DNA of 64,000 nt from contig CM060733.1 in assembly GCA_030704615.1 (NCBI GenBank), forward strand, positions 22,816,001-22,880,000, written 5' to 3'. The notes beneath the pieces are model-generated. The model had not been told where the DNA came from. It made no database searches and was given only the letters and a program-made list of their open reading frames with translations. This DNA comes from Takakia lepidozioides. Taxonomy: Eukaryota > Plantae > Bryophyta. Positions 9,336 to 51,700 of the stretch are shown one piece after another. Numbering within the stretch: position 1 is the stretch's first letter; each line of letters begins with the position of its first letter. Both the position numbers and the translations under genes were made by a program.

Positions 9336-9454
9336 GAATGGCCGTCAAAGTACCTACTTAGCGTGTCAATTCGGATGAATGGCGGGCCCATTAATGAATA
9401 CGAAAAAGAGGAACGGAACAAACGACAAGTACAGAAAAGCGAAATTCTTGTCAC

Positions 9455-13424: not shown

Positions 13425-13446
13425 ACCGTGAGGACACGGCTTTTTG

Positions 13447-17850: not shown

Positions 17851-18683
17851 TGCTTTCCCAACTCCCTGCTGGGCCGCGCGTGACCCTGCTCTTCAGAGGC
17901 GGAGTGCTCGGATTCAAGAGAGTGCCATGGGAGGCAACGACCGACGTCCTGTGGTGGAGTCTGACGATTCGGAGAAGAGTTTCGATAGTGAGGCGGATAG
18001 ATTGTTCCAAGCAGATGAGGCCGACGACTGGGAGGAATCAAGCGCAGAGGCAGAACCCCCATCCCCGAAATGGGTGAATGCGTTTTCCACCAAGATGCCA
18101 CGATAAAACCGATGCTAGTTTTTGCTCTCTCTCCCACTCTGTTTCTTGTGTCCTTATCATTTGCATTCATTTGTTTCATGCCCAAATTCTTGGTTACCTG
18201 GTTAGTGTTGTCCTGAACGAGAGGGACGAGGGTTATGTCTTGTAGAGATTACCAAAATGTATGTTACTTCATGATGAGAAATGCAGGAAAGGAAGATTAG
18301 AGTTGCAGATTGCGCCACTGAAACCCCAAGTTCGACAGAAGTCTCAGCCTGTGACATATGGGCATTTCACGCCCACAAACTTCAAGGAGTTTTGGGTCAG
18401 CCTTTAACCTCCACAGTTACGAGTCCTTCAAGTACAGACTTTGTGATCTTGTAGGATCGTGCAAAACGACAGAAGGGCTGTAGTTCAAAGACCCCTAAAT
18501 CCATGCAGCCCCAATCTCTCCTGGTGGCCAAGGCTGGTTGTATGGGACTGTCAGGCAGATGTACCCTGTATCATCATCATCCTTCCAGCAGCCTGCATCA
18601 GGAGGCAATTACAACCAACAGCCTCAGTACATACAGAGTCCCCAAAGCCCACAGACAGGTAATTTCAACCAGCCCCCCCCCCC

Positions 18684-21460: not shown

Positions 21461-22973
21461 TGACAGGTTGGGGGCAAGGCAAGGCACGGCAAGGCAAAGC
21501 AAGGCAAGGCAGTCTCAGCCATCATTGCAAAATAGGGGCCCTCCACCAATCTGGAAAGGATTACCCACCACAAGTAGCACTATACTGTCCTTCACAAATC
21601 AAATCATGAAAAACATAGAGTAGTTTAGTTTTTCAGATTTCAGGATGAATCCAGAGTCAACCACCATCTTCACTCCTCTGTAATCCTCATGGTACCCTGC
21701 AGCACTTAGCAATCAGCATATTAAGCGGAAGCCCTCACCTGTGCCCGTCCCAAAAACCACCACAAAATTAATTGTGTTAGTGAGGATGCACGAGGTGAAT
21801 GGCAGGCTTCCACACTTGCTATCGAGGTCAAATACACATCATACTAAGTACAGAGAACACCATAAAGTACCGGGAGATCAACAAACAGAAAAGAGAACCT
21901 TTTAAACTGTTTGGGGGATGGTAGCCATTGCTCCATAACCTAGTTGTTATGGGAAAGCCTCTACCATCACCACAGCACACACACCTAACATCAGCAAGGT
22001 CTTGCAAATCACTATTGAGCAAGAAAGAGAGCTGTGTCAAGCATGCTAGGGTTTATATAAAGGGAAGAGAACTTCCTTATTTCGGATGGGAGCGCCGCCA
22101 TTCATCAATGATCCAGGGGGAAGGGCTCCTAGGGAATCTCCAAAGAGGCAAGCAGTACATCAGCCATCATTGCCCCTGTTCCCTTGTGCAGTAGGAAACC
22201 AAACAGAAGAGCAAGAGTGCCTTCACTTACCTCAAAAGAACCGTCGTCTCCTTAATGAATCCATAGAGGCGGCATTCATAGAGTCTTTAAACAACCCAAG
22301 GAGCGGCAACTCAACGTAACTGCAGCTCGAGCACCTTCCATGCCGCCATTGCGCGATCCTTCAACGCAAGAGGCAAATACAGGGTTGCGCAGGGACCTTA
22401 CCTTGTCTTGCCACAACAGTCATCCACTGTCCGGATGAATTTCATCCAACGTAGCCTTGAACCCGGCGGACAGATTCCAATTTCCATCAAGGTAGGATGA
22501 GAAAAATCGAGAAATTACACTAAGGTTCAACACATCACAGCTATGGTATAGGCTGGATGCAATCAAGGTAGGCTATACTGAAAAATCGTGGGCAAAAATC
22601 AGATATGTGCAAAGGTAAAACGGATGAAACCAGGATGAAATTCATCCGGTTTTCTCTTTAACCCAGATTTTAGGCACCCAAAATATGGAAGTCGGGATAA
22701 CAATTCCATAGACCCAGGTAACAGAGGGAGAGAGAGGGTGAGATCAAGAAACCAAAAAAATAAAAAATGGGGGGGGGAGTGACTGAGCCCGTGGTGCTCA
22801 GCAGCTGGTGGTGGTGCTCAGTCACTTCCCCCACCCCACCTTTTTCTTTTCTCTTTGTTGCCCCCTCTCGAGACCCCAAGCACTTGCTGCTCTCAGCGCC
22901 CGACATGCTTGGTTTTTTTTATTTTTGATCTGGAATGTTCCTAATGAGGCCAACTTGTGGGTTTGCATGACAG

Positions 22974-29078: not shown

Positions 29079-30141
29079 TTGGGCTATCGTTGGAGTCTTG
29101 ACTTCGCAGGCCCATTGCCATTGACGATTCGTCATAACAAGTATGTGCTGGTGATGGTGGAACACTTTTCCAAATGGATTGAATTGGTGGCATTGCCTGA
29201 CATGGCAAGTGAGGGGGTTACGTATGCATTCTTAGATCGAGTGTTTAGCCATTTTGGTGCTCCAGCCGAGGTACTCACGGACCAGAGGAGAGAGTTCTTG
29301 GGGGAGTTTTAGGCTTTGTGTGAGCAAGCCTTGATAGATCACCGCACTACTTCTCGGGATCATCCCGAGGCTGATGGCTTGGCGGATAAAGTTGTTCAGA
29401 CAGTCAAGAGAAGTTTGCGTAAGTACGGTTTGCGGACACCTAGGAGATTGGGACCTTCAGCTGCCTTGGCTAGCTATGGGCTATAGGTTCAGCAAACAAG
29501 CTTCACTTGCCGCCTTCTCACCTTACTTTCTTCTCTTCGGCCGAGAGCCGGATTTACCTGCATCTATTCGCAGGGAGGCTGTAGTAGTTCTCAACCTTGA
29601 TGATCCGGATGTGTGGACACAAGCATGTGCTCAGCGGGCAGAGTTGTTCAAGAGAGTCATGCCTGTGGCTTTTGAGAACCTTGCTATTGCCCAACACCGA
29701 GACACATCGAGGTACGCCAATATACATGGAGGGGGATATCGGCCAAGTGTTCGGCGTTTCCACCTTGGGAACTATGTGTATTTGCAGCAGACAGTGCCTA
29801 CGACCTTGGATGTCATAGCAGGACGTGTGATTCTAAGGGTCAGGGAGGTGTTGCCTTCAGGAGTGTTGATTCTGGAGGGTCGAGACGACATGGTATGGAA
29901 GGACCATGTGCGCAATTGTGCGCCATGTCACCTTCCACATGTGGATGAGAGGATAGATCCCAACCTTGCAGTGGTACCTGTAGGGTTGCGTTGCATGCTA
30001 TGTGGGCATGCTGGTGGCGCCGCAACCATGTTGGTGTGTGACAAATGCTCAAGGGGGTGGCACATGGGATGCTTGACACCGCCACTTGAGGAGGTTCCTA
30101 TCGGAGAATGGTTGTGTCCACGATGCTTTGGACAGAGGTAG
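29079..30141 (+). pseudogene. Ty3/Gypsy integrase with C-terminal PHD finger (contains a stop and frameshifts)
   Basis: RWSLDFAGPLP..YVLVMVEHFSKW..VLTDQ..EF; FSPYFLLFGR; CMLC..MLVCDKCSRGWHMGCLTPPLEEVPIGEWLCPRC (C4HC3). Confidence 0.88.
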
Positions 30142-31450: not shown

Positions 31451-31476
31451 ATATTAAAAAATAAATAAAAAAAATA

Positions 31477-31805
31477 GCGACCAACATTACTGGCAGTCGT
31501 AGCATTTTCAGAAATTAAAAATATACAAGCGACCACCAGTAATGGCGGTCGCTCTATTTTTTAAAAAAAAAAAAAAAAAAAAAACAACTGCCATAACTGG
31601 CATTCGTAGCATTTTTTGAAATTAAAATATACAAGCGACCGCCAAAAAATGGCTGTCGCTCTATTTTTTTTTTTAAAAAAAAAAGCAACCACCAATAATG
31701 GCGGTCTCTCTATTTTTGTTTAAAAAAAAAATGCGACCGCCATTACTGGCACTCGCTGCATTTTCAGAAATTAAAAATATTCAAGCGACCGCCAGTAATG
31801 GCAAT
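31477..31805. repeat. AGCGACC(R)CCA/TGGCGGTCGCT repeats separated by A/T tracts (CACTA-type sub-terminal pattern)
   Basis: Alternating direct and inverted copies. Confidence 0.6.
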
Positions 31806-31969: not shown

Positions 31970-32792
31970 AGCCCTCTTCAAATCTATTTGCAGGTTTGTG
32001 CCTATTCCCCACCTACCAACTTCAAAAATCTCGAGGCTGGGCCAAGGCTCAACCCCTATTTACCAACTTTGTAAATCTGAACGCTAAGCCATAGGCCCAT
32101 TCAGGTCAATCTTGGCTGTAAACTGAATGTAAACTCCAAGTGGGAAGCCTACATTTGGACAGCAAACAAAAGTAGAGAGGAAAAGTGGATTGCCAATGCC
32201 CATGGTGTGGGCAACTTGAAGACAAATTTATTATTTATTTCCTGATTTTCTGTCCTAGGTATTCCCACAAGGAGATGCCCTCTTCAAATCCATTTGCAGG
32301 TTTGTGCCTATACCCTATCTACCAACTTCAGAAATCTCGAGGCTAAGCCGAGGCTCAACCCCGGCCCTCTTTCACACTCTCGGCACTAGACTGAATTTAA
32401 ACTTAGGACAGGAAGCCTACCTTTCAGCAGCAAATAGAATCAGAGAGGAAGGGGGATCGCAAATTCCCGTGAGAATCCATTCAGGGAATTGTTCATGTGC
32501 CCCTATTTACCAACTTTGTAAATCTGAAGGCTAAGCCAAAAGCCCAGGCCCATTCAGGTCAATCTTGGTTGTATATTGAATGTAAACTCCAAGCGGGAAG
32601 CTGCATTTGGACAACAAACAGAAGTAGAGAGGAAAAGTGGATTGCCAATGCCTGTGGTGTGGGCAACCTGAAGACATTAATATTCATATCCTAATTTAAT
32701 GTCCTAGGTATTCTCACAAGGGAGACGCCTTCTTCAAATCCATTTGCAGGTTTGTGCCTATAATACGCTATCTACCAACTTCAAAAATCTCG
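31970..32792. repeat. Tandemly duplicated LINE-tail-derived segments
   Basis: CTTCAAATC(C/T)ATTTGCAGGTTTGTGCCTA at about 31976, 32283 and 32733; similar to 19900-20160. Confidence 0.65.
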
Positions 32793-33720
32793 AACAAAAG
32801 GTCCAGTGAGTAAGCTTACCGCATTGGCCTGGTTGAAAAGGGCTAATTCACGGGGCTCCACAATTGGTTGCTTGTGTTTACAGATTCGCTCCCACACATG
32901 AGGTTTACTATTTCATGAGCAGAAACCATGAGCCATGAGCCATGAGCCGCATGAGCGGTGAGCCGAAGTCTAAGACATGCGGATTTCATGAGCGGACTCC
33001 TCCAAATTTGGAAATGCGACAGATTAAACAAGTATTAAAATAATAGTTTTATATTTGACCTTGCCGTTTTTGGAAGTTACGGATCCTGTAATGCGGCGAA
33101 GATATGTCGTCAGTAACAACTCCGCTCATGGTTTTTTAGATCCGCTCATGGAAATGAATGACCGTGCAACGAGAAATCCAGTATACCACGGCAAAAGGAC
33201 GTCGCATACTGGCCTGTATAGAGTATTCCGCGGTTTTACATGCCTTAACATTGGAATGAAGCTGACCCTTTTGCCGCGACTGAACCAATAGAGTCTGCAC
33301 AATTCTGTCATCTTCCAGTATTCGGCGGGAAAGTTTTGCAAGTGAACTAGGAAATGCGGTGCCGCATTAGGGTTCGCACGTGCGAAATTTCTGGGCGGTT
33401 TGGTGTTGCTGACTGCCGCATCTAGCAGTACCTACGACGTTACTTGGAAATGCGGTTCCGCATTTCCTTGTCGGGGGTCGAATGAGGAAAGCAAAGTTTG
33501 GGAGAGCAGAAAAACAGGAACCCTCCAACACACAAAAATACATGCACGTGGAAACACGAGTGAATGACATAGTATTATCGACGTTCGAGCAAAACAGGTT
33601 ACTGGTAGGCAAGACATAAGTCGGACCTTTCTGTGGCCAGAGTCGGAGCTACTTGCAGCAGTACAGTTCTACTATCCGAAAAGGATGGGTGTACCATTGT
33701 GTTGGGACCGCAAGCCAAGG

Positions 33721-36700
33721 TCACTGGTCCCCTGGATCCATACTCAGAAGAGTGTGCACCTCTTGGGGGCTCAACCCTGGTGCATGTATGAAGTGATGAG
33801 TTGTGGAATTACACCGGAGTCTCTTTAGGTACACGTAGTACAGATGCTTGCAAGGGCAGTATGATGCCCCCTTGTTCGCCATGATCTGAAAGTCGATGCA
33901 ATTGCAGGTGGGTAATTCTGAAATGGTGATGGTGTACACCTCATTGCGAACAGCTGAGCCTGCCGTGGCCATCTGATACACACGCCCGAAGCCTGGTGGG
34001 GGCACTTCTGTCGAGCTCTGGATTGTACAATTCATCCGAAGTGCATTCCCCATCCTTGTCTCGTTCACTTTTGAGGGAGGTCGCCGCCTCTTCGGTTTCC
34101 CCCAATGGTGTGTAGGATGCTTAGAGCTGTCGGGTCCCATTGTTCTTGCTCCCACAGGGGTCGGTGGTGGAGGCTGTGGAAGCGGAAATGGTTGTCTGGG
34201 GACGTCAGTGCGTTGCACCATCCAAAATCCTGCGGCGGTAAGGGCGTCGGCCTCAACCTGACTCAGATCGCAGCCTGGTTCCACCGGCCACACCGGGGGA
34301 GCCTCTGGCATTGTTTGTATGCCGTACTTGGGCTTTCCATACACGCAAGTCATAATGTCGTGCCTGCAGAACCAGAACTGGGTGGTTGTCGCCTCCGCAA
34401 ACTTTGCATGGACAAATCTTCCTGTAAAAGTAGGAGCAGGGACAGCACCATCTGGATTCCTCCTTATCATCTCTAAACAACGTTGCCGTGTATCCACTCG
34501 AATTGCGGAACACCTGCCACGAAACGACGGCTTTGTGCGAGCAATTCTCCATTGTGACGCAGACACAGTCGTCTCCACAATGGCTTGGCCATACTGCATA
34601 ACAGGGGGCGGAATCTGGGGCAAGCGAGCGGTGGGAATTTCTCGCACGGAATCCCCGCTTGAAGGCGATGACGATCTGGAATTTCTTGGGCTTCCACTGC
34701 TGAAAGACACATTGTGCGGCAACATGACGGGCCCTCGAGGTGCTGTCCGAATGTTCCTGTCGGATCTCCAGGAATCCTCTTCGCACCCGGGCTCCTCTTC
34801 AATCCTCCGCCTCACAGGGCGAGTACGGACGTCCCCCTCTAGGTGCTCACCTCTGCGGTGCAGAGGCGTCCCTTTGATCTTCTCTCGCAATGCTGTCGCC
34901 CATTTCAGTGGATTCTTCGACCTCGAAGCTGTTCGCACCAACAATTCCTCCCTGTCCGGCCCAAAGCCCCATTGTTTCCCGCTCAGGAACTTGTAGTACG
35001 TGGCTTGCTGCATGATTGCTCTGTCGATGTCCTCCGTTGTGGCCATCACTACGTCCACCAGATGTACGGCAGAAGACGCTCGCCAGGAGCAGTGCACTGA
35101 TTCTGCCATATTCGTGTTCGGCATGTCCGTGTCGGAATCCAAGCACCGCTCCTACAAGGACATAGACAATGGTGAGGAACCAATGGAAAGGTCCGTAATA
35201 GAAAGACAATTGCACGAAAATGACAGCATCATACCTCCCGCATGTACTGTCCGAACTGTCGATATCGGAAATGCCACCACCCCAACCAGCTGTGCAAGGC
35301 TCCCAGATTGGTTGTCTCCACTGCACCTGACGTGTTCCACCAAGCCTCGATGATAGCAAACTTAACCTCCGCGTCATCAAATGTGGGTGCATCCTTCCAC
35401 GCCGTACAAAGGACACGATGTTCAGCCTGGAATGAGCTAGCAACAAATTTGGTAGTGTAGTGGGATAGACTCTGCATCCAATGGAATCCACAGGATCTCT
35501 GTTTCCCCTCCATTGGCACATTGGGTCCTCACCGTACACACGCCGCACCGCTGCCCAGTTGGCCTGAGCGTTGTCTGCCATGAATCCCCTGAAATTGGGC
35601 TCTGGCAATCCTGCCCTTGCCATCTGCTCGTTTATGCCCTCCCATAGATGCATCTCCGACTGTGTGTCCTCCCCTTTCATCTCGCAGATTGCAATCGTCA
35701 TGAGCCTCTTGGAGTGATAGTCATAAACATGCGCACCCATAGTCACCCACTGATGGTTTGTAATTCGCTTGATGTGATCAAACATCACCCAAGCATTCGA
35801 CAGGTTTCCAGTTGTCATGCGAGTGACCAAGTCGACTCCAGTCCTAGGCCCACACGTCGACATTTTAAAAATGTAACAACGATCGGATTCGCTGCCTTGC
35901 CCTGGAAACCTGCTACCTTGGATGTAGTCATATCCAGTCATTCGTTTCACCTCCAGGATTGAGTGCATGTCCGACCCCCGGCCGAACTCCTGCTTGCAAG
36001 ATACGATGTGATTCCGCACATTCGGACTACAAACGTGCGAGACGGACTCCAACAGGTCAAGCATCTCCTCTTCGTTCAAGGGCACTCGGTCTGAACCATC
36101 TTCAGACATGATTTTGCCTAGAACAATCTTGTGGGCTGCCTTCAGCTGAATCTGCTTTGGTCTGGCACCGGGGCTCAATTTCACCTCCTCTTTTATGATG
36201 TCGTGTGCTTCCTGCACAGCCTCACGCATGTTGCCTCTCGCCAAGGGGTGGCAGTGGACCCCAACGTGTATGCAAGCTCTAGTCAAGTCCGGGAGCAAAT
36301 GGATAACGTAATATTGCTTGGCTCTGCACATGGACATGCACGTCGGTGGTTCTTTGCAATGTGCGCACTTGAAAGTACCCGCAGGAGCTTGGCTGGAGAC
36401 AATGAATGGATGATGCGTTGTGCCAGTCCAATCCGTCTCGTTTCTCCGCCCTCCTTTGGAAAGAAAGTGGAAGCGGGAGGGATTCAGGCACCTCAGCTTC
36501 CCCGCACAAAGGACGTATCGTACACGAACACCATCAGCAATTTTCGTGCTACTGGTCTTCGTCACACACCAGGGGTGTCCGTCATGCTTTCGATCCATGT
36601 CTGTTAACATCCCTGAGGCTTTGTTTGAGGAAGTAACAGGTGGAAACTCGAAGATGACATTGCCATCGACTTCGGGAGGCAGATACGTTACCTTCCTGAC

Positions 36701-37326
36701 CGGAAATTTGGCATAGTCGAGAGCAGCCAGCTCGGAGCGAGAACCATCGAGGTGATGTTGCCGTAGGAGCTGCACAATGGACCGGGTTGGGTTATGCTCG
36801 AGAGTACATGCGTAGCACCTGCAGAGACGTCCATCTCGGATTTGAACGACCGTGTGGAGGACATGGGGACCTCAATGCACTCATCTTCATCGTCGGAAAT
36901 GTCGAATACGTCCACACGAGAAGCTATGGAGGGTCTTGACGGTCCAGGTCGGGAATGATTATCGTTGCATACCTCTCTGTTGGCAGTGGCCACCTGTCGG
37001 TTTCCGGACTCCTTTGTGGATGGTGTGGGCAGCGACTGATTCGGAAAGGGAATGGGCATTCCCACAGCTCGCTACAGGATGGTGTCTGATGGGGGTACGT
37101 GCCATTCGATTCCGCAACCTCCGTCGTTACCTAGCACGACAATGGTCTCGTCAACCTGTCCAGGAACATCATTCCTTTCTTCTTCCAAATAAACTGTGCC
37201 CGGTTTGAGCTTGAATTTGGAACAAAGATAAGTTTCGGTCACTCTGCAAAGTCCTCCCTCGTTTGGGATCCAGGCTCTCTCAAGTTGCGGAGGACAACAA
37301 ACTATAGCGTAGGAATTCGGAGCCAT
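33721..37326 (-). pseudogene. MULE transposase (GCM-like + DDE + SWIM); intron 35152-35234; stop at about 37072 and frameshifts at about 36780 and 35520
   Basis: HPWCVTK..CAGKLRCLNP..CAHC..C..HVGVHCHP; WVMFDH; FRGFMADNAQA; RSCGFHW; NTNMAES; PTCNCIDF..CPCKH. Same intron position (YMRE|E) as element A. Confidence 0.9.
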
Positions 37327-37708
37327 CGAAGACCGCACGAAGTTGGCAAGTGCGAGGTTCAGTATAGCGACAGACGAAGGCTCACAGGCACCATGCGGAG
37401 TCCATCGACGATTGGAAGTCGCACATTGAAGTGGAAAGTATAGTTTCAAGCTACATGCATGAAGGTGGGAGGTGTGATTCCATAGCCAGTAAGTTAGACA
37501 ATGATGGCCGAATCGGCGACGAAATAACATCTCCTGACAGTTTCTCCTAAGGGTGGATCCAGCAGTATTCTCGGTACAGACAGGAGCGTTCGCACTAACA
37601 AGTGCCAGGACTGTTAGTTAAAACGGTCAGACAACCAAGTTGTGCTCATCAAGACTGGCCGCAATTCTGTTGTTTCGGAACAATGCAACCCATTCAGGTT
37701 CAGCATGC

Positions 37709-39490
37709 GGAAATGAGGTTTCAGATTTCCGTCCGGAGTGATTCTTTCGATTACTGCTGGATGGAAATACGGCGCCGCATTTCCGTATTACATCTTGGCC
37801 ATGCACCAGAGCGACGGAAATGCGGCACCGAGTTTCCGTCCGGGGGAAACCTTTACACTCTTCAGAACGGAAATGCGGTAACGCATTTCCATCCAGCAAG
37901 CACGGTATGTGAAGGTGGAACAGAAATGCGGTACCGCATTTCCGTTCTGATTGAGAATCATGAACAACGGGAACAAAAATGCGGCACCGCATTTCCGTCC
38001 GAGTCGCACTTTCCGACATTCCAGAACGGAAATGCGGCACCGCATTTCCGCCCGGGTGAGACCTTCATACTCTCCAGAACGGAAATGCGGTAACGCATTT
38101 CCATCCAGCAAGCACGGTAAGTGAAGGTGGAACGGAAATGCGGTACCGCATTTCCGTGCTGATTGAGAATCATGAACAACGGGAACAGAAATGCGGCACC
38201 GCATTTCCGTCCGAGTCGCACTTTCCGACATTCCAGAACGGAAATGCGGCACCGCATTTCCGCCCGGGTGAGACCTTCATACTCTCCAAAACGGAAATGC
38301 GGTAACGCATTTCCATCCAGCAAGCACGGTATGTGAAGGTGGAACGGAAATGCGGTACCGCACTTCAGTTCTGATTGAGAATTATGAACAACGGGAACAG
38401 AAATGCGGCACCGCATTTCTGTCCGAGTCGCACTTTCCGACATTCCAGAACGGAAATGCGGCGCCGCATTTCCGTTTTGTATCTGATGCATGGAGCCGAG
38501 TGCAATTCCGACCGCTTGAGACATTCATACTATCCAGAACGGAAATGCGGTACCGCATTTCTGTTCTGACTGAAAATCGTGAACCATCGGAACTGAAATG
38601 CGGCAGCGCATTTCCATCCGAGTCGCACCTCCCTCACAAGCTAGAACGGAAATGCGGCACCGCATTTCCGTTCTTATGAAAAATCGTGAAACATCGGAAC
38701 TGAAATGCGGTACAGCATTTCCGTCGGAGTCGCACCTTCCGACATTCCAAAACGGAAATACGGCGCCGCATTTCCGTTTTGTATGTGAGGCATAGAGCTT
38801 TGGAACGAAAATGCGGCACCGCATTTCCGCCAGGGTCAGACCTTAATACTCTACAGAACGGAAATGCGGTACCGCATTTCCATTCTGACTGAAAATCGTC
38901 AACAGCGGGAACAGAAATGCGTCGCAACTTCCGACATTCTAGAACGGAAATGCGGCGCCGCATGGAGTTGTGGGACGGAAATGCGGTGCCGCATTTCCAT
39001 CCATGTGAGACCTTCAAACTTTCCAGACCGGAAATGCGGCACCGCATTTCCGTTCAGTGAGACCTCTATACTTTCCCGAACGGAAATGTGGCACGGCATT
39101 TCCGTTCATCAACTAAGGTATGTGAAGGGGGAACGGAAATGCGGTACCGCATTTCCGTTCAGATTGAAAATCATGAACCACGGGAACTGAAATGTTGTGC
39201 CGCATTTCCGTCCGGATCGCACGTTTCGACATTCCTGAACGGAAATGCGGCGCCGCATTTCCCTTTTGTATCTCATACATGGAGCTGTGGGACGGAAATG
39301 CGGCACCGTATTTCCGTTCAACAACTAAGGTATGTGAAGGTGGAACGGAAATGCGGTGCCGCATTTTCTTCCAACAAGCACGGATGTGTAGCTTCGTGAT
39401 GGTACTTAACGGAAATGCGGCGCCGCATTCGCATTTTCACTCCAACTCCAAATTTGAACACGTGGAGCAACGGAATTGCGGCACATGTCT
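37709..39490. repeat. Array of ~33 palindromes GGAAATGCGGYRCCGCATTTCC with 53-bp period (212-bp higher-order unit of 4), between the two divergent genes
   Basis: Starts at 37763, 37816, 37869, 37922, 37975, 38028, 38081, 38134, 38187, 38240, 38293, 38346, 38399, 38452 ... 39135, 39188, 39241, 39294, 39347. Confidence 0.97.
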
Positions 39491-39842
39491 GCACTCTATC
39501 TGACTGAAGTGGCATGAGGCGGCGCGGCCTGACCGTTGGATAATGATGTTTGTTTTTCGGACGGCAGGCGTATCCTGAACGATTCAAATTTCGTAATGAC
39601 GCAAAGTCCACGAGGAGACACTTTCCTCCAACCCTTTCGAACCCAAGTGCTGCATCACCGCCGTTTCATCTTCTTTTGTCGTGTCTCCTCAGTCACCCCT
39701 CTCGCGCCCTTTCCATCTGCACTCTTCGCCCCTTTTCCCTGTCTCTGTTCTTCTTATGCTCGAACCTGAGAGGGAGGGAGTGCGTGCACCAGAGAAGAGA
39801 CATCGTCGCAAGCTCCGAAAATTGTACTTCGGACGTAGGCCA

Positions 39843-42800
39843 ATGCCGAAGGGGAGGAAGCAGATGCGTCTACAGGAGGAGATTGCCATCTCGCAGCATC
39901 AGGCCACGCAGGCAACCCAGCCACCAGTGAGAGCTCCGTGCTATCGGGATTCGCCAGCTGATCGAGCACCGAAACCCGCCTCATTTTTCTTCTGCAATTC
40001 TTAGACTGTATGCTAGGAGACTTGACTGCAGAAGATGTTTGCATGCCTAACCGGAAAGGTGGACGTGCTGGAGGGATCGCAGGAATCCGAAGAGCCGCAG
40101 GCAGAGTCCGTGGAGCTAGCTGCAGCACGCACACCCAGCCGATCCACGAGCACGGGTCTTCCTGCCGGTCCTAGCCCTGTGCGTTTCAAGGACGCGGCTT
40201 CCAAGGGCAAGTCTTTGCAGTTCAAAGCCCCAGAGAGCGACTCGCCTTCAAAGGTCATGGAGAATCGCCAGCAGGGGTCTAGCCCTTCTCCAGCAAAGAC
40301 GAAGAAGAAGCAGCCCGTCCTTCAACTTGTTTCTGAACCGGACCAGGCCGTTTCCCCCCCACCCAGGCGAATGAAGCAGATTCAATTGCAGCAGACACCT
40401 TCACCTGCAAGAATGAGGAAGCACAAGGCAATCAGGGGGAGGGCGGAGCAGTCTCCCGCAAAACCGATTCCACGAGCTGAAGCCCAGTTCCTGCTTGATT
40501 TCCAACTGCTGCAGCGAAGGCAATGGGATCGACCGTCGATCTGGTACCGGAGGAGGGTGCTGCCTCTCAACGTTCTCAGCAAGACCTGACCACAGTTGAG
40601 GAAGACCTGACCACTGAAGGCCCGGAGGAGGCCTCTGCAATTGCACAATTGTCCGCAAAGATTCCCCAGAGTGCAGCTCCAGTTGGGGATGCTCAAGCTG
40701 CTCAGCCCCTGCCGCCACCAGCAGAAATGTCTCCGGAGGAATTCCAAAGTGCAGCGGATACAATGTTGGAGGAGACACATAGTAGCATTGGCAGAGTTCT
40801 GGGCAGCAGGGTATTCCAGCGGACTCTTCGAATCCCACTCTGTCGCATGGTCTCCCTTCCCATCGTCAGGCAGGCACTTCCCGGAGATGTGGATAAGCTC
40901 AAGTTCGCATTTCGAGAAGGGTACCGTCTAGGTTCGCCAGCCTTCTACGTTTCCCTTGAGAATGAGGACGGCGAATCTCGTGGACCCACTGCGGAGGAAT
41001 TGTCAACATGGGATACCCACTGGCACACTCGCAACGACGAATTCGAGGCAACCCTGAAGGGTGATCCCGACTTCGGCCATATGTCGGGTAAAATGTTCTT
41101 TGTGTGGGACGGGAATCACCGACTTCTCGCCTGGTGGGAGTACATCAAGCAGAACCATGCCAAGCACATTGGCTGGCATTACATGGTGGAGTGTGTCATC
41201 CTCAAGGTGAAGGCGGCAGACTCCTCCCTGCTCAAGAATGCCATGGCGGACCTCAACTCGTAAGATACTCATACCCTCCCAAGCACGTTCGAAATGCGGT
41301 GCCGCATTTCGGTTTCCAATCTGTTTTGTTTCCGTGCTTTCGTGGACTGAACTGGAGAGTGTGCCTTGCAGGGTCACTGAAAATGCGTACGTGCATACCC
41401 ACATGGCACATATGCTGTACAGGGTGAGGAAAACTGGTCTCACTGATCCGCACATGTTCGCGGAAATGCTGGAGCCCGAGCTCATTCAGAAAGCCGTGGC
41501 AAAAACTGACCGGACATGGTATCGTCTCACTATGGATGGAATGGTGGAGGTGATATACGAAGTAAGTCGTCCTCCCATTTCCCTCTGCTCATCCTTCCCC
41601 AATTTCCGGTAATCTTTCCACATGAATCGAATGTAACGCTTCTGCATGTTTTTGTTGGCAGTCAAACATCAAGCTGGATTTGGCCCATGCCAAACGCTTC
41701 TTCATGGAAAGTGAGGGGCAGGTCAAAACGTTGCAGTCATTGACTGAGCACTTGAAGGAAGCCGGGGTCAAGTCCAGAACGAAATACAAGTCAAAGCTTG
41801 TGAAGCTGGTGGCCATTGCAGATCCGGCACTTGGAAAGGACTTCATCCCCGAGATTGCAAAACACTATTCTCGGGCCATGCAGCCGACCATGCAGTTGGA
41901 GAAACTGCATCACCTCTCAACGGCATGTGTTGAAGCGAAAGAGAAGGTGATGTTTCAATTCACTGAAGTTCCTTCCTAGCAATAGCCACTCTTCTTCCTG
42001 CTCCTGACATTGGATCGGAAATGGCAGACACGGTGGCTGTCGATCTGGAATGCATCGGAGAGTATAAGGACAATGTGGTCTTTTCCACTCGAAGTTTCCG
42101 ACCCTGCAGTGGATGTGTGGCTCAACCGCATGACTTGGTGGTTCCAGGTAATTCAAGGTACTTCCCCAGAGTTGCTTTTCTGAAATGAATTCCCTGAACT
42201 GCTACGTGACAATGCATGTGGGAATCGCAGGTAATGACGAATGCGAAGGAGCAAGTCGTAATGCATACAAATTCGTTCGGCTTGTACGTCAAATGGGATG
42301 GAACACAGACATTGGAAGACTACGTGACACGTTTCAGATGTGCTTACAAGGACAACCTCTTCGCCAGGGAGCTGCAGACAGCAAGAAGGAGCGTGGAGTT
42401 TACACATCAGGAGGGAGCGGGAAAAGCTGCAATGCGAATTGTTTACAGGTGAAGCCCAGCTGTCCTTGTATGCAAAGCCTGGTAATGAGGTTTGTCTGGG
42501 AAATGCGGCACCGCATTCGCATTTTATGTTTTCGGTTGCACTCTGCGAGTACGTTGGTCTCAACTTTTGCTCACGCATGCTGACTGCCCTGCAGGTATAT
42601 GAAATACGTGCTTCTTCAGACAGGGGCCCTGGCTCAAGAGCCCCCGTTCTTCATGGCTTGGACCGTGGCGGGCCCAAGCTGTGTCTACACACCCGAGATG
42701 CAGAAACAATGGCATGCCGCGCATCTGGTTGGATGCCCGTGGTACCTGGACATGTCTGGCGGAATTGTTGACGAGTCTGAGAAAGATCTGCACGCGAAAG

Positions 42801-44947
42801 CAGAAGAGAAGAGAAAGGAAAGACGTGTCCCTGCTCGGCCAGAGTCGGCAAAGGAAGCTGCTGCTCTGGAACAATCCAGAAAGGCAGCTGAGATGGCACA
42901 GAAGACGGTGGATGCAGCTGTGCAGGCTCAACAGAAGGGGTCGAAGAAGCGGACTCGCCAGCAAGGAGCAGCAGTTGTGACACCCAAGAAAACGAAGAAG
43001 CAGAAACAGATAGTGCAGGTAGAGGGTGAGGAAGAGGACTCCGATGGAGACTTTGCAACCAGCCCACCCCCCGAGACGCAGCCGAAATCCCCTGTGCCCA
43101 CCGTTGTCACGAGAGGGACGAGAACTGGCTCGGCAAAGAAGGCACTCTTCAACCCCCCGGGGGGGCACCCTTTCGAGCCGGTGGAAATGAAGAGGCCGAA
43201 AGTGGATCCCGATACAGTAGTCCAGTGTGTGAATGAGAGTTTCTTGGCGGCTTTGGATGGACGGGCAGCCAAGTTGGCATACATGAAGACCATGGAGGGT
43301 CTGAAGGGCAGAGCACTGAAGAAGGCGGCTGCCGAAGAGCCTTCCGACACCCCCGGGTTTCTGAAGATGGTCTCGTTCTTTGAGAGGGTGTGTGCAGACA
43401 AGGATTGCAGGAGGGGCGGAAATGCCACCGAGTGGTCTTGCGATATGATCATCTTGGATATTCCGGACGGAGAGCCTGTGGAAGGACTGCAAGCTTTGCC
43501 ATCTTGGAACAGGTACTCCGAGGACTTTTGGAAGAAAGGATTCGGGCTCGCCCGCATGGTGTTGGACGACAGAGGCTGTGTGGTTGTCCTGGCGAGCAGA
43601 GGCAAAAACACGCAGACAGGAATTGCGAAGTGGACCCGCAAGAGCGCCGTCCCAATTCTGAAGAAGAAGTGGACGTGCATCAACACATTGGGCCTTCGGT
43701 CGGAAGGGAAGAAGGTAATTACGACCTTGGCACTCGTCCTTTCATTTTCTTAGGAGTTTTGAAATGCGGTGCCGCATTCGATTTCTAATCGTTCCCCACT
43801 GTGTATGCAGACGAAGCAGTTCGATGCATACTGCTTTGTGAAGGAGAACTCCACCTTTGCTTTCCGGAAGGAGGGATTGTTGGTTGACCCGAACTGCGAC
43901 CCCATCGATTACGACGTCCTGTTCAACAACGTTCCCACGGAACTTCTCCCTCATAGCCTCACTTCAACTGAACCCCTGCGGTATTCACGCACTCGGAGCC
44001 CTGCCTTCATTCAGACAATTATGGAGACATGCACTGACGTGGAGGGCACAGTGCTCGACCTCATCTGTGGGACAGGTATGCAGAATCTTGTTGTATGCTT
44101 TTCTGCAAACTCTCGTTATGCTTTCATTCGCAACATCTGAAGGGCCATGTCATAATGTGTGGATGGCATTGTAACAGGTGCCTCAATGTGGGCTGGGCGG
44201 TTTTCCGACCGGCACCTCTTTGCCTACGAGGAGGACACAGCGTCTGGGGATCCCATCTGGAAGGGCTGCAACGGAATGTGAAGGCTCCCATCGAAGTCAA
44301 AGACTCCTCGGATTCGTCGGAGTCGGAGGAAGAGACAGTGGACATTGATGCCGAGGAGAACCCGGAATACGAGTGAGTGCAAACATTGTAAGTTTGCAAA
44401 GCCTTCTGTGTGATTTTTTGTCAAACGCATTTCCGGACTGTGGTTCTCATTGGTCTCGTTGGTGATTGTTATGTGCAGGATTGGAGGATCCGGGTCGAAA
44501 CATGTAAGGCCTACACTTCCTGCCAGGAAGAATGTCCCGTTCTTTGCGAGGGCCGACTTCATGACGAGCCCGGTGAAGGACTACTCCCTTCCTAGTTATG
44601 CAGCTAAACTCGCAAATACAGCGATTAGACGATGTGAGAATCCCAGTAAAGTAGAGCAGATTTTGGAGAGGGCTAGGGAGGACAGAAGGATAAGGAAAGA
44701 GTTGGCAACAGCTGAGGCAGGTAGACGGGTGCGAAAGTTCATATGTGATTCAGCGGATGAGAGCGATGCAGACAGGGAGGACGACGAGCCAACGGAGGTG
44801 AGATGGTCGGTTCCGCAAGGTGAAGATGGGATTTTCGAAAGCCTGGCCAACGACCAGTCCGCTGGAGATGAGAAAGGCAATGACGGGGTGGAGGCGGAGC
44901 AGGACAGTCAAGGACAGGACGACAATAGTGATGATTTTCAAGATTAA
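39843..44947 (+). CDS. Multi-exon gene: ParB/Srx-like domain + beta-class (N4C/N6A) DNA methyltransferase-like domain + acidic tail; two apparent frameshifts (about 40499 and 44240)
   Basis: Inferred GT-AG exons: 39843-39926, 40032-41259, 41372-41561, 41662-41946, 42028-42147, 42231-42448, 42595-43714, 43811-44075, 44178-44372, 44479-44947, all phase-compatible. Motifs: IPLCRM..DVDKLK..FFVWDGNHRLLAW; CDMIILDIPDG; RSPAFIQTIMETCTDVEGTVLDLICGTGAS..GRFSDRHLFAYEED. Confidence 0.75.
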
Positions 44948-45083
44948 TACAATTTTAATGAACTCTCTGTACATTTAAATTCAATTCCAGAGTATATAAA
45001 GGGAATTCTCCCCGTCCTTCATGTCCCCTCTCCCATGTGCTTCTAAACGACAACATCGTCCAAACCTGGTCCCTCCCAAAATC

Positions 45084-46116
45084 TGAAATGCGGCACCGCA
45101 TTTCAATGTCTGAACGGAAATGTGGCAACTGCAAAAACCTCGTTTGGAAATGCGGCACCGCATTTCCAAAACCGGGGCAAGAACAAATTTCCGTTTCATG
45201 GTTTGGACATCAGAAACTGTTCGGACAAACGGCATTTCCATTTCCGACACGGCAGTTTTGCCGATTGCCAGCTCCTTCCATGGATGTAAATCGAAATGCG
45301 GAGGTCGAACATGGAAATGCGGTGCCGCATTTACCTTTTGGAGATGGACATTTTTCCAACTGCAGACCCATCGACGTTCTTGGGCTCCCAATTCCATGAT
45401 GCTAGACGGGAATGCGGCACCGCATTCCATTGTCCAATAAGAAATTTCGATGACGTACATGGAAATGCGGCGCCGCATTTCCAAAAGGGACATCGTTGTT
45501 TGCCCAATTCCAGACCCTTTGACGGAAATGCGGCACCGCATTCCATCGTCCTATAAAAACTTACATTGTCCTATAAAAACTTTCAATTGCCCAACATGGG
45601 AAATGCGGCGCCGCATTTCCAAAACAGACATCGTTGTTTGTCCAATTCCAGACCCGTGTGGGCATTCCGTCTTGATGGACGGAAATGCGGCACCGCATTC
45701 CATTGTCCGATTCGATATTTTGATGACAGACATGGAAATGCGGTGCCGCATTTCCAGAACTTCCATCGTTGTTTGTCCAATTCCAGACCCTTCGACGGAA
45801 ATGCGGCACCGCATTCCATTGTGCTCTCCGGAAATGCTGTGCCGCATTTCATTGTCCGGTACGAAATTTCGATGACGGACATGGAAATGCGGTGCCGCAT
45901 TTCAAGTATGGACATGGACAAGCATTAGCGACTGGACATGCTTGGATAGTTCAAGGTCGAATATGGAAATGCGGCGCCGCATTTCAAATTCGAAGTATGG
46001 TAATGCCATGTCAGGAAATGAAATGTTGTACAACATTTCCGTTACGACGACAACGGAGGAAAGGGAGCTGCCAGAAATCGCTTCATGGAGAAAATGGAAT
46101 GCGGTGCCGAATTTCC
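45084..46116. repeat. Second array of element-B palindromes (~15 copies, less regular spacing)
   Basis: GGAAATGCGGYRCCGCATT(T)CC at about 45084, 45146, 45313, 45408, 45461, 45524, 45599, 45681, 45734, 45796, 45883 and 45965. Confidence 0.93.
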
Positions 46117-46392
46117 GAGCTTCGGCGTGTACATGTTTCCTACAACTCATACATGGATTTTCTTCACCTCAGGACTGTGATATCGCTGACTCTGGTATAT
46201 TCATATGGACAGACACATTGTAGAAATGAGACCTCAAATTGTAAACAGTGGGCCAATTACGGCAGTTCTTGAACACGATGAAACACAAGCACACAGAAGT
46301 GAGGTACGATGGGTTGTTTTATTGATCGAACACGGTGTCTCACATTTAGCAACTCCAGACAAATCTAAGCCCTTCCTCCTTCTACATGGGTG

Positions 46393-46968
46393 TCACCAAG
46401 TCGACGGAACTTCGATAGCCCTCAAAACAAGCTCATTACTGATGCGGCATCTCGAGGTAAACTGCAATGCGGTCGATCTGGTGCCCTTGGTGGAGCTGAC
46501 GACAATGTCATGCCCATCAATCATACCACCATCATACATTGACAAGGTCACTGTGGGCCTCCTGTGCCCGTGCGATTCGTCTTCGCAACTCAGCCGAATG
46601 TCTCCATACACTGGAAAAGCGGAGTGAACTCCACGAATATAGTTTTCCCCGGTGCCGTCCTCCCGCCACTGGCAGCAGTTCCAGCGCCAAAGTGAGGCCG
46701 TGCGTGATCTGTCCGGCATCCCATTCCACCTTGGTATATCGAGGTCAACAATTTTCAGGACCCACGGACCGCATTGACCCTCGCCCTCACCTCGCTCAAA
46801 GCGGTAATAGCCCTCCAGATACTCCATTGCGCGCAAAGACTCCCGCTTGATTCCAGATGCGTCTGTGAAAAGTGAAAGCCAGACAATGATGTCTCCTGAT
46901 TCTGGTTTGAACATAGCATAATCGTGGCCATGATAAGGGCAGTCAGCAGGATTTCGGCGGCACGACAT
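46393..46968 (-). CDS. Unknown ~190-aa protein (element B cargo, paralogue 1)
   Basis: Open frame MSCRRNPADCPYHGHDYAM..RWNCCQW..YGDIR..DGGMIDGHDIVV..ELVLRAIEVP; homology to paralogue 2 along its length supports coding status. Confidence 0.7.
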   Translation of the reverse strand: MSCRRNPADCPYHGHDYAMFKPESGDIIVWLSLFTDASGIKRESLRAMEYLEGYYRFERGEGEGQCGPWVLKIVDLDIPRWNGMPDRSRTASLWRWNCCQWREDGTGENYIRGVHSAFPVYGDIRLSCEDESHGHRRPTVTLSMYDGGMIDGHDIVVSSTKGTRSTALQFTSRCRISNELVLRAIEVPSTW

Positions 46969-47501
46969 CCCTGAAAAAGAGTAGCGCAGTACGCTCAATG
47001 ACAGCAGCTCCCGGATGGAGGAGGTAGCAGCGCGGTGGCTGGAAGAAATTCAAGCAAACGCTGCTACATTTAAGTTTCCCCCCGACAGGAACCTGCATGG
47101 ATGAAGATTGGCTCATCCATGAATGTAGCCGTTTCAGTTTCCTTCCCTGCCATGCAAACTATGGGCAGTAAGTGCTAGGTGGGCCTATAGCCACTCGAGA
47201 CGACGAAGTCCATCCCCCCTTCGATGTAAATGCGGCGCCGAATTTCCATCCGGGGGATGGACTTCGGTGGCAGATTTCAAACTATACCCCGTGGATGAGA
47301 AAGAGGTATTGGTTCATCCACCGCTGGCTTGTTGAACACGTTACACGATGATTGGTGGGTACTTGTGACCCAGATGGTCCATTATTGGAGCCCGCACTGC
47401 TCTTCCGCTTCTCATCATTTCGAAAATCTAAGGGCTTCGTTGCTGTCCGCAAGGTCATTGTCATCGGCATCAAAGATGTCCTCAGGTCCTTCTTTGCAAG
47501 G

Positions 47502-48063
47502 ATGTCGTGCTTCCGGAACCGGGACGACTGCCCTTATGGAGGCATCGATTATGCAATGTATTCGGCCACATCGGAAGACATCGTTATCTGGTACACAGAT
47601 TACACAGAAGATACTGGTTCGAATGTGGAACATTGTCCGCTTTTGAGTATCTCCCAGGCCAGTACGCCTTTGAGCGGGGTGACGATCTTGGTCTGAGGAG
47701 TCCGTGGCTCCTGCGCATCCTTGATTCCGATTTCCCAGCTACGACGGGCACCCATGCAGAAGAATGCGCACTGCTATGCTGTTGCGGTGGAATTGCTGCC
47801 AGTGGACGTGGGTGGACTCCATCGGAGAGACTTATACTCCTGAAGGAGTGCGCTCATCTTCTCCATTGTATGGGGACATTCGCATTGGTGTGGACGGCGA
47901 AAACGTGAAGCTTTCCATATTCGATGGTGGTATGATTGAAGGGCAGGACATTGTGGTGAACATCAATAGGGGCGGTACAACGGCTGCAATCCAGTTTACC
48001 TGGAGGAGCCCGAAGACTCATGAGCTAGTTCTCAGAGCAGTCGAAGTCCCATTGACAACGTGA
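47502..48063 (+). pseudogene. Unknown protein, paralogue 2 (two frameshifts, about 47632 and 47762)
   Basis: MSCFRNRDDCPYGGIDYAM../AFEYLPGQYAFERG..PWLLRILD../RWNCCQW..YGDIR..DGGMIEGQDIVV..ELVLRAVEVP. Confidence 0.7.
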
Positions 48064-49069
48064 CTTGTATTCAGAAGGCACATGGCTAAAGATTTGTTTG
48101 CACAATCAGCACAGTAGACGTGCTTCAAATGCAATTCATGTGGATCAATAAAAACCCCATTGTGCCCTCTTTTTGTTCTATTATGTATCCATCGTTCCCA
48201 AAATGCGTCATTCCTCATTTCGTTTGGGATTGGGAGTGTGGGTGGATTTTGCAAGTGGCTGGTAGGCTGAAATGGGCCCCCATTGTACAGATCAGTACCA
48301 CCCTACCATTCGCGAAACATTGCCTTTCAATATGTAATTCTAAAAAACATTGCCGAACCTCCTTCATCGGGAGGTCCTTCTCCCCCTATGACCGTGACAC
48401 CCTAAACCCTATTCCCGTGGACACTCATTTCCGGAAAATAGTCATGCTCATGTTTTTTTCGACACTTACGACTCTGCTCATGGCTCATGGCTCATGAAAT
48501 AGCAGCCCCCCCCACACAGTGCTCAATCTGGCTACTGTTGCAGATGTCTGCATTCACCCTCTTGCTTAAACTTATTGCGAGAGAATCCACAAGCCCCTTT
48601 GGTGAAAAATGTACAGCAAGGCAGTTTTAAATGATGGGATTTCAGGTCACAGACTGGTCAAGTGACCCTGAAATACAATAAATCTCAGGGAGCTTGTACA
48701 TGGCAAGCTAGATTGTAACTTAGTGCATATAACTTTGCAAACTTAGTCAATAGATGTATCTCAGAAATCCTAATCTTCCAACAGATATTCAGAAATCAAT
48801 CACCAGTCCCTAACTACCAAGAATGTGGTACACGTGTATATTTATTTAAAGATACTAAACCAGATCATCAACCATAACAAACCAAAACTTACACTCACCG
48901 GAGTTTGCCATGCATGCTTCCACATTTCGCGTTCATGTCAGCAAGGCCAGTCTCCACATTTACATCCAGTGCAATCCCAGCTTTGATGATGCCATGCTGT
49001 CATTTCATAACATGAGCCAAGAGCCCACATTTGCAGGATGGATTAACTTCTTCGCATGGTGCATTAAGA

Positions 49070-49941: not shown

Positions 49942-51700
49942 TACACGATCACAAAGTCCTCCAACCACTCCTGGAAAAGGCCATTCATTAGCGTGCTAAA
50001 GGTCACGGGTGCGTTGGTGAGCCCAAAATGCACACCAAGAACTCATCTGAACCATATCTTGTCCAGTACGCGGTCTTCTCCTCATCTTCTTCCGCCACTC
50101 GGATTTGATGGTAACCTAAGCGCAAATCGATCCAGCCGAAATACTTTGCTCCTGCCAACCGATTGAAGAGATCGTCAATCCTTGGCAAAGGGTACCGGTT
50201 TTTGATAGTCACCTTATTCAGAGCCCTGTAATCGACACACATCCGCAGCGTCCCATCCTTCTTGTCTGCGAATAGCACCGGGGCTCCGTAGGGTGACTTA
50301 CTCGGCCGGATGTACCCCTTCGACATTAGATCCTTGAGCTGGGCCTTTAGCTCGACCAACTCTCTGTGGCTCAACCGGTAGGGCGCCTTGGCAGGCGGCT
50401 CCGATCAGTATCACCTCTATTTTGTTATCAACTCCTATTCGCGGTGGCAAGCCGCTTGGTAAATCCTCCGGCATCACATCCTCCTTGATCCAATCTGGGC
50501 TCGGCTCCCTATCGACTTCTCCTTCCACTTGTCTTACGTAAAGCAAAAATTGGGGTTCGTGTGGCTCCTCCATGACCCACTCCTTTGTTGTCAGTAGGTT
50601 TATTCGCCCTCCCACTCGGTTGGGCGTTTCCGACACCCGTAAAACTTTGCCATCATCCCCACACAGTAGCGTGACTACTCTCTTGCGGTCATTTATGACC
50701 GCTTCGGATTTGCTCAAAAAGGTCATCCCCAAAATGAGATCCACTCCATCGATCTCGCAAATGGTGAAGTTCTCACGTCCCTCCCAACTCTCGAGCCGAA
50801 GAGGAACATCGAACACCAACCTTGTCGCCAGTTGTGGTTCTCTTTTGGCAGAACGCACTTTAATAGAGGCCCCCACATCACTTGTCGGGAGCCCCAGCTT
50901 CTGTGTCGTTGCCGGTGTCATGAAGGAGTGCGACGCTCCTATGTCCACCAACAACGACACGTTAGTTCCGGAAATTATCCCACTCACGAACATTAACTGA
51001 CTTCCTTTACGCAAGGGGCTAGTCTCCTGATACAACTCACAAGAGTAGTTGCCTACCTTGCAAGTCTTGGCAACCACCGCTTCCACCAAGCGGCTGATGG
51101 AATCTTCGGACAACTTCGTGGTCGCCCGAGTCATGTTCAATTATCGGGGTTTTGCGCACTTCTTGGTCATGTGCCCGAGCTCCCCGCAATTATAACACAC
51201 TCCATCGAAGGTCGCCTTTTGTCCGCCATAAGGCGCTGCACCTGATTTTTCTTTCGGAGCACCAGGTGCCGCCTTGATGTGTGAAGGCCCTCCCTTCGAA
51301 TTCCATGTGCCATTGTCGCCGTGTGGCCTATCCCACTTCTTTTCCGGTCGGAAGGAGTCACCCTCCAGCTGGGTCTTCTTGTGGTTCAGCTCCGTACGGC
51401 CTTGTTTTTCGCCCCTAGGGATATCTGAGAAACATTCAGCCCTTTCAATTGCCTCGTTCAAAATCATAGGTGGCTTCTCCTCCAACTTCCGTCTGGCCCA
51501 TGGGGCCAGTCCCACCACAAAGTTGAAGACCATTTCTGGTTCTGCCATATCCGCGACTTTGAGCAACAACACATTGAAAGCCTGAACATATCCCCGAATG
51601 TCATCCGTTTGCTTCAATTCCTCATCTTGTCTCGAGCAAGCCAGGACGCGTTGAAGGGCACAAACTATCTTTTAATAAGTTCCTTGAATCCATTCCAGCT
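49942..51700 (-). pseudogene. Ty3/Gypsy gag-protease-RT (degenerate)
   Basis: Zinc knuckle CYNCGELGHMTKKC; protease LLVDIGASHSF; [40 protein letters not shown]. Confidence 0.92.

Follow-up and report, generated by a model that had tools for sequence, protein, structure and literature searches.

The 64,000-nucleotide stretch of Takakia lepidozioides DNA analysed here (the window) contains a mobile element of ~15.6 kb at 32900-48510, referred to as element B, which is bounded by terminal inverted repeats (TIRs). Element B carries a transposase gene, a divergent accessory gene encoding an N-terminal ParB/sulfiredoxin (Srx)-like domain, a long linker and a C-terminal beta-class methylase-like domain, and 51 copies of one 22-bp palindrome (GGAAATGCGGYRCCGCATTTCC). 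The pairing of the two genes is conserved, the palindromes are element-specific and confined to non-coding DNA, and their half-sites are constrained. We suggest, with a probability of about one half, that element B is one member of an ancient group of Mutator-like elements of seed-free land plants with 9-bp target site duplications (TSDs), and that the accessory protein binds the palindromes of its own element and acts on its own family. From the sequence we infer that the palindromes are sites of a dimeric protein encoded by the element itself.

Palindrome arrays between the termini of element B

The left TIR (GAGGTTTACTATTTCATGAGC, 32900-32920, plus strand) is exact, with 0 chance matches expected, and the right TIR (48490-48510, minus strand) has 3 mismatches, matching at 18/21 positions. 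The TSD, read directly as CCCACACAT at 32891-32899 on the left side, matches CCCACACAG at 48511-48519 at 8/9 positions. These termini agree with the initial annotation of this DNA, which had described a 15.6-kb unit bounded by TIRs and TSDs. Subterminal CATGAGC repeats follow the left TIR and extend to ~33000. Nine matches from a scan with the TIR 19-mer, which have nothing else in common with element B, were taken as chance.

The palindromes are distributed over the whole element. Two copies (33352-33465) lie in the stretch that separates the left TIR from the 3' end of the transposase gene, which occupies 33724-37269 on the minus strand, and 31 copies form array 1 (37757-39430), which occupies the shared 5' region of the transposase gene and the accessory gene (40035-44947, plus strand). 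Three copies are found in introns of the accessory gene, one in intron 1 (41292-41309), one in a later intron (42501-42518) and one in an intron within the methylase-like domain (43762-43779), while 14 copies form array 2 downstream of the gene (45080-46114) and the last one is located at 47228. None of the 51 copies overlaps a predicted exon, in agreement with the earlier count of more than 50 palindromes lying almost entirely in non-coding DNA. Array 1 has a 53-bp period and is organized in higher-order units of 212 bp that share 95% identity. Many overlapping open reading frames (ORFs) of 100-190 amino acids within this array (37602-39503, e.g. 37602-38093) are translated repeat with recurrent MRCRISV and GNAAPHF peptides, and were rejected as genes.

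When we searched the window for the palindrome core (AAATGCGGNNCCGCATTT) with up to 2 mismatches, 64 matches were obtained against 0.03 expected. Fifty-one of them are inside element B, and the other 13 represent a variant inside a second element, element A (531-2623). An exact scan of metagenome contigs for the B palindrome gave 0 matches. The observed/expected ratio of CpG is 0.86 in element B, 1.2-1.4 in the arrays and 0.52-0.67 in the flanks. A position count over the 51 copies showed that the half-sites GGAAATGCGG and CCGCATTTCC are almost invariant and that the central two bases vary by transitions only (CA 19, TG 11, CG 10 and TA 10). This pattern is what would be expected if a dimer bound the site without contacting its centre, and it fits constrained half-sites around a free centre that would decay by CpG transitions.

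The main rival explanation concerns the identity of the binder. The palindromes might be bound by an N-terminal zinc-finger domain of the transposase, serving autoregulation or transpososome assembly, with the ParB-methylase protein acting elsewhere or without sequence specificity. Array 1 is located in the promoter region of the transposase, half-site-like strings (ATGCGG and GGAAATGCG) are present in the subterminal 150 bp of element B, and a 2026 preprint describes a Mutator transposase as a sequence-specific activator of its cognate copies. However, the terminal and subterminal repeats, to which a transposase has to bind, are unlike the palindrome, being CATGAGC in element B and GCTGATATC and CAGCAA in the related Riccia element L014, as against the L014 palindrome CCGGCGGAsTCCGCCGG. 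In addition, palindromes are found on either side of the accessory gene and within its introns, CcrM and other methylases of the beta class work as dimers at short symmetric sequences, and the anatomy copies that of the VANC sites of VANDAL21. On these four grounds we favour the accessory protein as the binder and regard binding by the transposase as rather unlikely.

An accessory gene with ParB/Srx-like and methylase-like domains

The accessory gene is multi-exon, with approximate exons at 40523-41258, 41372-41561, 41662-~41943 and ~42021-~42150, others up to 42599-43753, then 43820-44077 and 44174 on, up to 44947. Splice sites could be read in the sequence (donor TC/GTAAGA at 41258, acceptor at 41372, donor GAA/GTAAGT at 41561 and acceptor at 41662), and tblastn with the ORFs of locus L015 and with Riccia proteins was collinear with the gene. 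An apparent frameshift near 41980 was discarded, as it corresponds to an in-frame intron near 41943-42021. No frame break was found in the accessory gene of element B, which is apparently intact.

The ORF at 40523-41263 has 33 homologues with 35-51% identity, all of them ORFs that carry no annotation in the metagenome and assembly collections. Their alignment defines a domain of 150 residues (40802-41260, plus strand) in which DGNHR is invariant. The AlphaFold 2 (AF2) model built with this alignment has a predicted local distance difference test (pLDDT) value of 90.5, and the top 50 Foldseek matches in the PDB all belong to the ParB/Srx superfamily, including Srx, ParB, Noc, PadC, KorB, SbnI, a serine kinase and Atu1540. 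The probabilities are ~0.99-1.0 for the top dozen and lower further down; the E values, from 0.01, are modest and the TM values are 0.4-0.58, but the list is uniform. The ParB/Srx-like fold proposed in the initial annotation is thus borne out by modelling. The DGNHR motif is placed at the strand-to-helix turn of the model, which in Srx and ParB folds is the place that holds the nucleotide phosphates. Among 34 members, none gave a significant match to Pfam models of the ParB/Srx clan (ParBc, DndB and others), the best being DndB with an E value of 0.087 in 2 members. Pfam on the window ORFs gave nothing useful for the ParB exon or the methylase exons, and phmmer searches of single exons against the PDB returned noise only. 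The model places the N-terminal domain in the ParB/Srx fold, and it appears to fit no curated family.

A profile of this domain matched 1232 proteins at E ≤0.001 and 656 at E ≤1e-10 among 1.84 billion representatives. The long matches are annotated gene models of Riccia sorocarpa (901-1207 amino acids), Adiantum nelumboides and A. capillus-veneris. Fern genomes of the genus Adiantum carry the accessory gene. When the ParB domain and the L015 methylase ORF were compared with 50,697 phage records by tblastn, no match was found.

These features also bear on the idea that the accessory protein works as a true ParB, which would load at the palindromes and bridge or condense the element, or tether its excised or replicated copies, in a structural rather than an epigenetic role. 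The ParB/Srx fold with its conserved loop of the phosphate-binding type would suit such a role, and the clustered inverted repeats resemble centromere-like site arrays. However, the CTP-binding GERRxRA box of ParB is replaced by the invariant DGNHR, Pfam detected neither a helix-turn-helix (HTH) domain nor the C-terminal dimerisation domain of ParB in full-length relatives, and partition would serve no obvious purpose for a nuclear transposon that moves by cut and paste. We therefore consider a partition-like role improbable, and the term 'parS-like', which had been given to the palindromes, holds as an analogy only.

The C-terminal domain (43349-44236, plus strand) is of the PF01555 (N6_N4_Mtase) type. 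The uninterrupted L015 ORF covers PF01555 positions 1-216 of 221 with 30.6 bits, and the relatives P0185 (31.7 bits) and P0191 (27.0 bits) are also over the gathering cut-off of 26.7 bits. Riccia members score slightly under or over this threshold, and some of them are labelled 'DNA methylase N-4/N-6 domain-containing protein' in UniRef. The B exons at 43349-43753, 43820-44077 and 44174 on are collinear with these methylase relatives and form a single in-frame tblastn high-scoring pair with the L015 ORF. The family profile matches CcrM and DpnA in the PDB with E values of ~0.01-0.02, and M1.HpyAVI as well, and the top Foldseek matches of the model, whose pLDDT is only 51, are CcrM, M1.HpyAVI, M.BceJIV and MboIIA, followed by MT-A70 enzymes. 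These searches support the amino-methyltransferase-like domain that had been proposed from the sequence.

In element B the motif IV region, CDMIILDIPDG, starts at 43439 and precedes motif I, VLDLICGTG, at 44051-44077, which is the order of the beta class. Motif IV is not that of a canonical catalyst. It reads DIPDG in B and L015, DIPEG in L007, DLPTG, DMPSG or DLPSG in Riccia and DVPFG in Adiantum, so that every member inspected has D-[ILMV]-P-x-G and never (D/N/S)PP(Y/F/W). In characterised enzymes, the flipped base is stacked against the aromatic residue of motif IV. Since this residue is lacking, the methyl transfer activity predicted for the accessory protein is doubtful; since the altered loop is nevertheless conserved, the methylase-like domain seems to be under selection.

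A tail motif, Y-x-L-P-x-Y-A, follows the methylase-like domain in element B (44573-44620, DYSLPSYAAKLA) and in Riccia (NYSLPAYAAEAA and YRLPKYAEQIA), and was seen at the C-termini of P0174, P0188, P0191 and P0192. It may be a docking peptide.

Conservation, superfamily and neighbouring sequences

We then compared related loci in other genomes. The Riccia loci L013 and L014, found via the accessory gene, show the same order as element B, namely transposase, tandem array, gene and second array, and their transposase homologue, encoded opposite to the gene, shares 36% identity over 416 amino acids (E values of 1e-68 to 1e-69). L014 measures 14,927 bp and has TIRs and a TSD of 9 bp without mismatch (CTTGATCCG). 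For L013, a possible TIR pair (2141 and 16019) was dropped since it is unlike element termini. In the reverse direction, the loci L015, L016 and L017 were found via the transposase only, and each has a ParB-domain gene within ~5 kb, divergent from the transposase in two loci and on the same strand in one. Linkage of accessory gene and transposase was seen in 7/7 loci that allowed both to be examined, in liverwort and other hosts, with 28-41% identity.

Every element examined has a palindrome of its own, present 3 to 51 times, with element B at the high end. L013 has TCCGGCGAGgCTCGCCGGA (6 copies) and TCCAGCGGAsTCCGCTGGA (9 copies), and L014 has 12 copies of the palindrome given above. In L015, 6 copies of TTGTGCGCTAGCGCACAA are located in the divergent intergenic region, while L016 has 3 copies of GTTCGGCACCGAAC and L017 has 3-4 copies of CCGTCGGATCCGACGG. 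Ten copies of AGCACTnAGTGCT are present in L001, in a 181-bp x 24.5 array directly upstream of the gene. L015 contains the ParB-methylase gene twice, together with an identical repeat of 36 bp, exactly 16,674 bp apart (4911-5027 and 21585-21701), which suggests adjacent element copies or a segmental duplication.

Among six elements, pairwise identity is 26-41% for the ParB domain and 29-48% for the transposase, with a correlation of r = 0.90 that leans on the close L013/L014 pair. Similar and correlated divergences are the pattern predicted for long co-inheritance rather than for recent capture. Family copies lacking the gene would have pointed to a one-off capture, as the initial annotation had noted; the copies carry gene and palindromes, in one Riccia copy between TIRs with a 9/9 TSD. 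Judged from these sequences, the gene with its palindrome set is not a one-off capture. A looser version of this idea holds that the gene is a passenger of the Pack-MULE type (MULE, Mutator-like element) and that the arrays arose by ordinary satellite expansion, gene and arrays being functionally unrelated. Element B does seem to pick up genes. At its right end, an intact 201-amino-acid ORF (paralogue 1, 46393-46998, minus strand, from the ORF list) and a second copy (paralogue 2, 47478-48057, plus strand) share 50% amino-acid identity and have no Pfam match, and no homologues of them were found in other elements of the lineage; they are best read as lineage-specific cargo. The two paralogues named in the initial annotation are accordingly both real, but the second one is split over three frames. 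Nevertheless, the linkage in all seven loci at such low identity, the motifs conserved in altered form and the own palindrome of every element largely refute the passenger explanation, and we regard it as very improbable.

The transposase of element B consists of blocks at 37269-36895, 36781-35522, 35525-35232 and 35151-33724 on the minus strand, as defined by tblastn with relatives. It is 40-42% identical to the relatives P0210-P0212 (E values of 1e-112 to 1e-122), and eight database proteins match it with 36-42% identity, all of them without a name or a Pfam domain. The reading frame changes at 35522-35525. An overlap of four bases between the frames on the two sides leaves no space for an intron. 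Unless the break is a sequencing error, this copy is probably unable to make its own transposase. No Pfam match to a MULE/MuDR model (PF10551 or related) was obtained for element B, the Riccia pieces or the eight database homologues, even at E values up to 1-10; Pfam on 11 transposase homologues gave nothing significant, and a transposase profile had no match in the PDB. The only hints are weak Pfam matches to SWIM at the C-terminus (E 0.11) and to the ZSWIM1-3 RNaseH-like domain (E 0.17). The GCM-DDE-SWIM transposase of the initial annotation therefore stands as a gene with homologues and a marginal SWIM match, but its frame is broken and Pfam does not recognise it as a MULE.

The Mutator-like assignment of element B rests on the 9-bp TSD (8/9 in B and 9/9 in L014), on the G-rich termini, and on a C-x2-H signature after the second acidic block of the transposase, which we take to be a trait of the MURA type. 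The TIRs, 21 bp with 18/21 matches in B and ~31 bp in L014, are in line with this probable assignment. Caution in the superfamily assignment matters here, because Plavaka elements were once misfiled as MULEs through accessory-gene homology, according to the authors of the Bostrychia study (bioRxiv 10.1101/2025.02.11.637652).

Element A, the second family member of the window, lies at 1-8121 on the minus strand, with an exact copy of the TIR at 8101-8121. In blastn, B 33753-36675 aligns to 7321-4406 with 70% identity, which indicates that element A has the opposite orientation to B and is truncated at the first position of the window. The degenerate transposase of element A (~4250-7400, plus strand) has an internal stop and a frame change, and the arrays at 494-3472 contain AAAT(C/T)CGGCGCCGAATTT. 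Two variants were observed, AAATCCGG in units of 84 bp (531-1561) and AAATTCGG in units of 51-53 bp (1768-2623), together with a 73-bp x 2.9 repeat with half-palindromes near the TIR (7508-7722). Element A had been reported to share the visible layout of B with a different palindrome. The transposase, the arrays and one TIR agree with that report, but the accessory gene is not visible, since any such gene would fall outside the window.

Several other features were observed in the window. A separate tandem array just outside element B (31454-31803) has units of ~48-52 and 107 bp, each with a palindrome of the form GCGACCGCCAnnnnTGGCGGTCGC between A-rich spacers; this palindrome is apparently unrelated to that of B and may belong to another element. 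A block of ~450 bp is tandemly duplicated at 32000-32800 (families D14-D20, 84-95% identity), abutting the left end of B. Long ORFs at 8145-9335 (a weak integrase-core match), 10847-12265 and 12247-13227 lie between two 10-bp arrays of the ACACAGCC type (8980-9165 and 13585-13801), and the region 8145-13800 is probably a retroelement remnant inserted beside element A. We also noted ORFs for a retroviral-type aspartyl protease (50298-51140), a PHD finger (29374-30141) and a plant basic helix-loop-helix protein of the SAC51 type (58971-60485), and a weak 'transposase-associated' domain (17387-18010). Scanning the window with Rfam and for tRNAs gave no match.

Comparison with known systems and proposed role

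The combination of a ParB-methylase gene with palindrome arrays had been presented as undescribed. However, accessory genes with ParB and methylase domains and arrays of inverted repeats have been published for transposons of brown, red and green algae. The giant Sola1-1_Ec32 of Ectocarpus encodes a 1104-amino-acid ParB-like and N4C/N6A methylase protein on the strand opposite to the transposase; the authors propose that this protein binds and modifies its own element, and the text consulted mentions no palindrome arrays (PMC12477816). Element B resembles it in being a giant TIR transposon with a protein of roughly 1000-1100 amino acids, with an N-terminal ParB-like and a C-terminal methylase-type domain, encoded opposite to the transposase, a likeness drawn from the description, while the two differ in superfamily (Sola1 versus Mutator-like with a 9-bp TSD) and in host (brown alga versus land plant). 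In the giant Plavaka elements of Bostrychia, PAG3 joins ParB to a 2-oxoglutarate oxygenase and adjoins tandem inverted-repeat arrays, and PAG2 joins an N6-adenine methylase to SET; self-binding and self-modification were proposed (bioRxiv 10.1101/2025.02.11.637652). Homologues of PAG2 and PAG3 are found in Mutator elements of Chondrus crispus, so that the cassette moves between superfamilies (bioRxiv 10.1101/2025.02.11.637652). Element B shares with the red algae a ParB accessory protein beside inverted-repeat arrays and an N6-methylase-type domain, but it has both domains in one protein instead of two genes, and neither an oxygenase nor a SET domain was detected. Judged by description, element B thus shows the algal type of architecture, in which a ParB-like and methylase accessory gene is divergent from the transposase and has inverted-repeat arrays nearby.

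ParB is also fused to 'chlorophyte-type Dam' methylases in chlorophytes/green algae and chytrids (Iyer and colleagues, PMC4738411). The plant proteins resemble these and the prokaryotic and phage fusions in the order of ParB before methylase and in the permuted motif order of the PF01555 type. They differ in a linker of several hundred residues and in having D-x-P-x-G versus DPPY. A limited literature check for ParB accessory genes in land-plant transposons, which is not proof of absence, found none. What appears to be new here is the land-plant lineage, the joining of ParB and methylase-like domains in one protein of an element with a 9-bp TSD, the family-wide D-x-P-x-G loop and the private series of palindromes.

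A functional parallel may be the anti-silencing protein VANC of the Arabidopsis VANDAL elements, which are Mutator-like. VANC recognizes a family-specific motif, protein and motif co-diverge, and the motifs are located in tandem repeats of VANDAL21 introns and upstream regions (PMC5735166). Likewise, the B lineage has a family-specific motif amplified in non-coding tandem repeats. The hypomethylating effect has been shown for VANC, whereas it is conjecture for the B lineage. VANC is not known to have a ParB or methylase domain.

Taking these comparisons together, we propose the following role. The accessory gene would have been inherited vertically with the transposase, while the palindromes, which are short and GC-cored, would have been amplified by tandem duplication in all non-coding compartments, from the promoter region common to both genes to the introns of the accessory gene, the DNA downstream of it and the subterminal DNA. 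The accessory protein would bind the palindromes as a dimer, only in its own element family, and would most likely keep the promoter region accessible via amino-methylation to N6-methyladenine (6mA) or N4-methylcytosine (4mC). If the methylase domain is inactive, the same accessibility might be achieved by occupancy. Such a protein would correspond in function to VANC and would be similar in kind to the products of the algal ParB-methylase accessory genes. We can also imagine a more elaborate scheme, which we regard as speculative and unlikely, in which the ParB-like domain acts as a nucleotide-gated clamp that spreads from the palindromes and carries a non-canonical methylase writing 6mA or 4mC. 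This self-mark would block silencing by 5-methylcytosine (5mC) and small RNAs, and the cassette, of prokaryotic origin, would have been exchanged among superfamilies from algae to land plants with a private site code for each element.

Here, we need to consider several points that weigh against the proposed explanation of element B. No DNA-binding domain was identified in the accessory protein, and the N-terminal fold of ParB is itself not the part that binds parS. The separate B exons, in which introns split the methylase-like domain, reach no Pfam threshold, although they align collinearly with relatives that do, and the AF2 model of this domain, built for a Riccia protein from a shallow alignment, has a low confidence (pLDDT 51). 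In every member, motif IV has neither the second proline nor the aromatic residue, which makes methyl transfer doubtful. The half-site-like strings in the subterminal DNA could be bound by the transposase. Finally, copy B, with its frame-broken transposase, may be inactive, and since neither Pfam nor PDB profiles recognise this transposase, the superfamily call depends on TSD length and termini.

In the literature consulted, proteins by which a transposon recognises and protects its own copies are experimentally known only from VANDAL/VANC in eudicots (bioRxiv 10.1101/2025.02.11.637652), and the algal ParB-methylase accessory genes have been noticed, with a conjectural function. The B lineage would extend this class of accessory genes from algae to land plants, and it offers a clean test case with one protein and one 22-bp palindrome in 51 copies. 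Since related elements with different palindromes are present in sequenced genomes such as that of Riccia, the specificity of protein and site, their co-evolution and their effects on 6mA, 4mC or against 5mC would be directly testable. The conserved D-x-P-x-G loop also raises the question of what role such a methylase fold may play.

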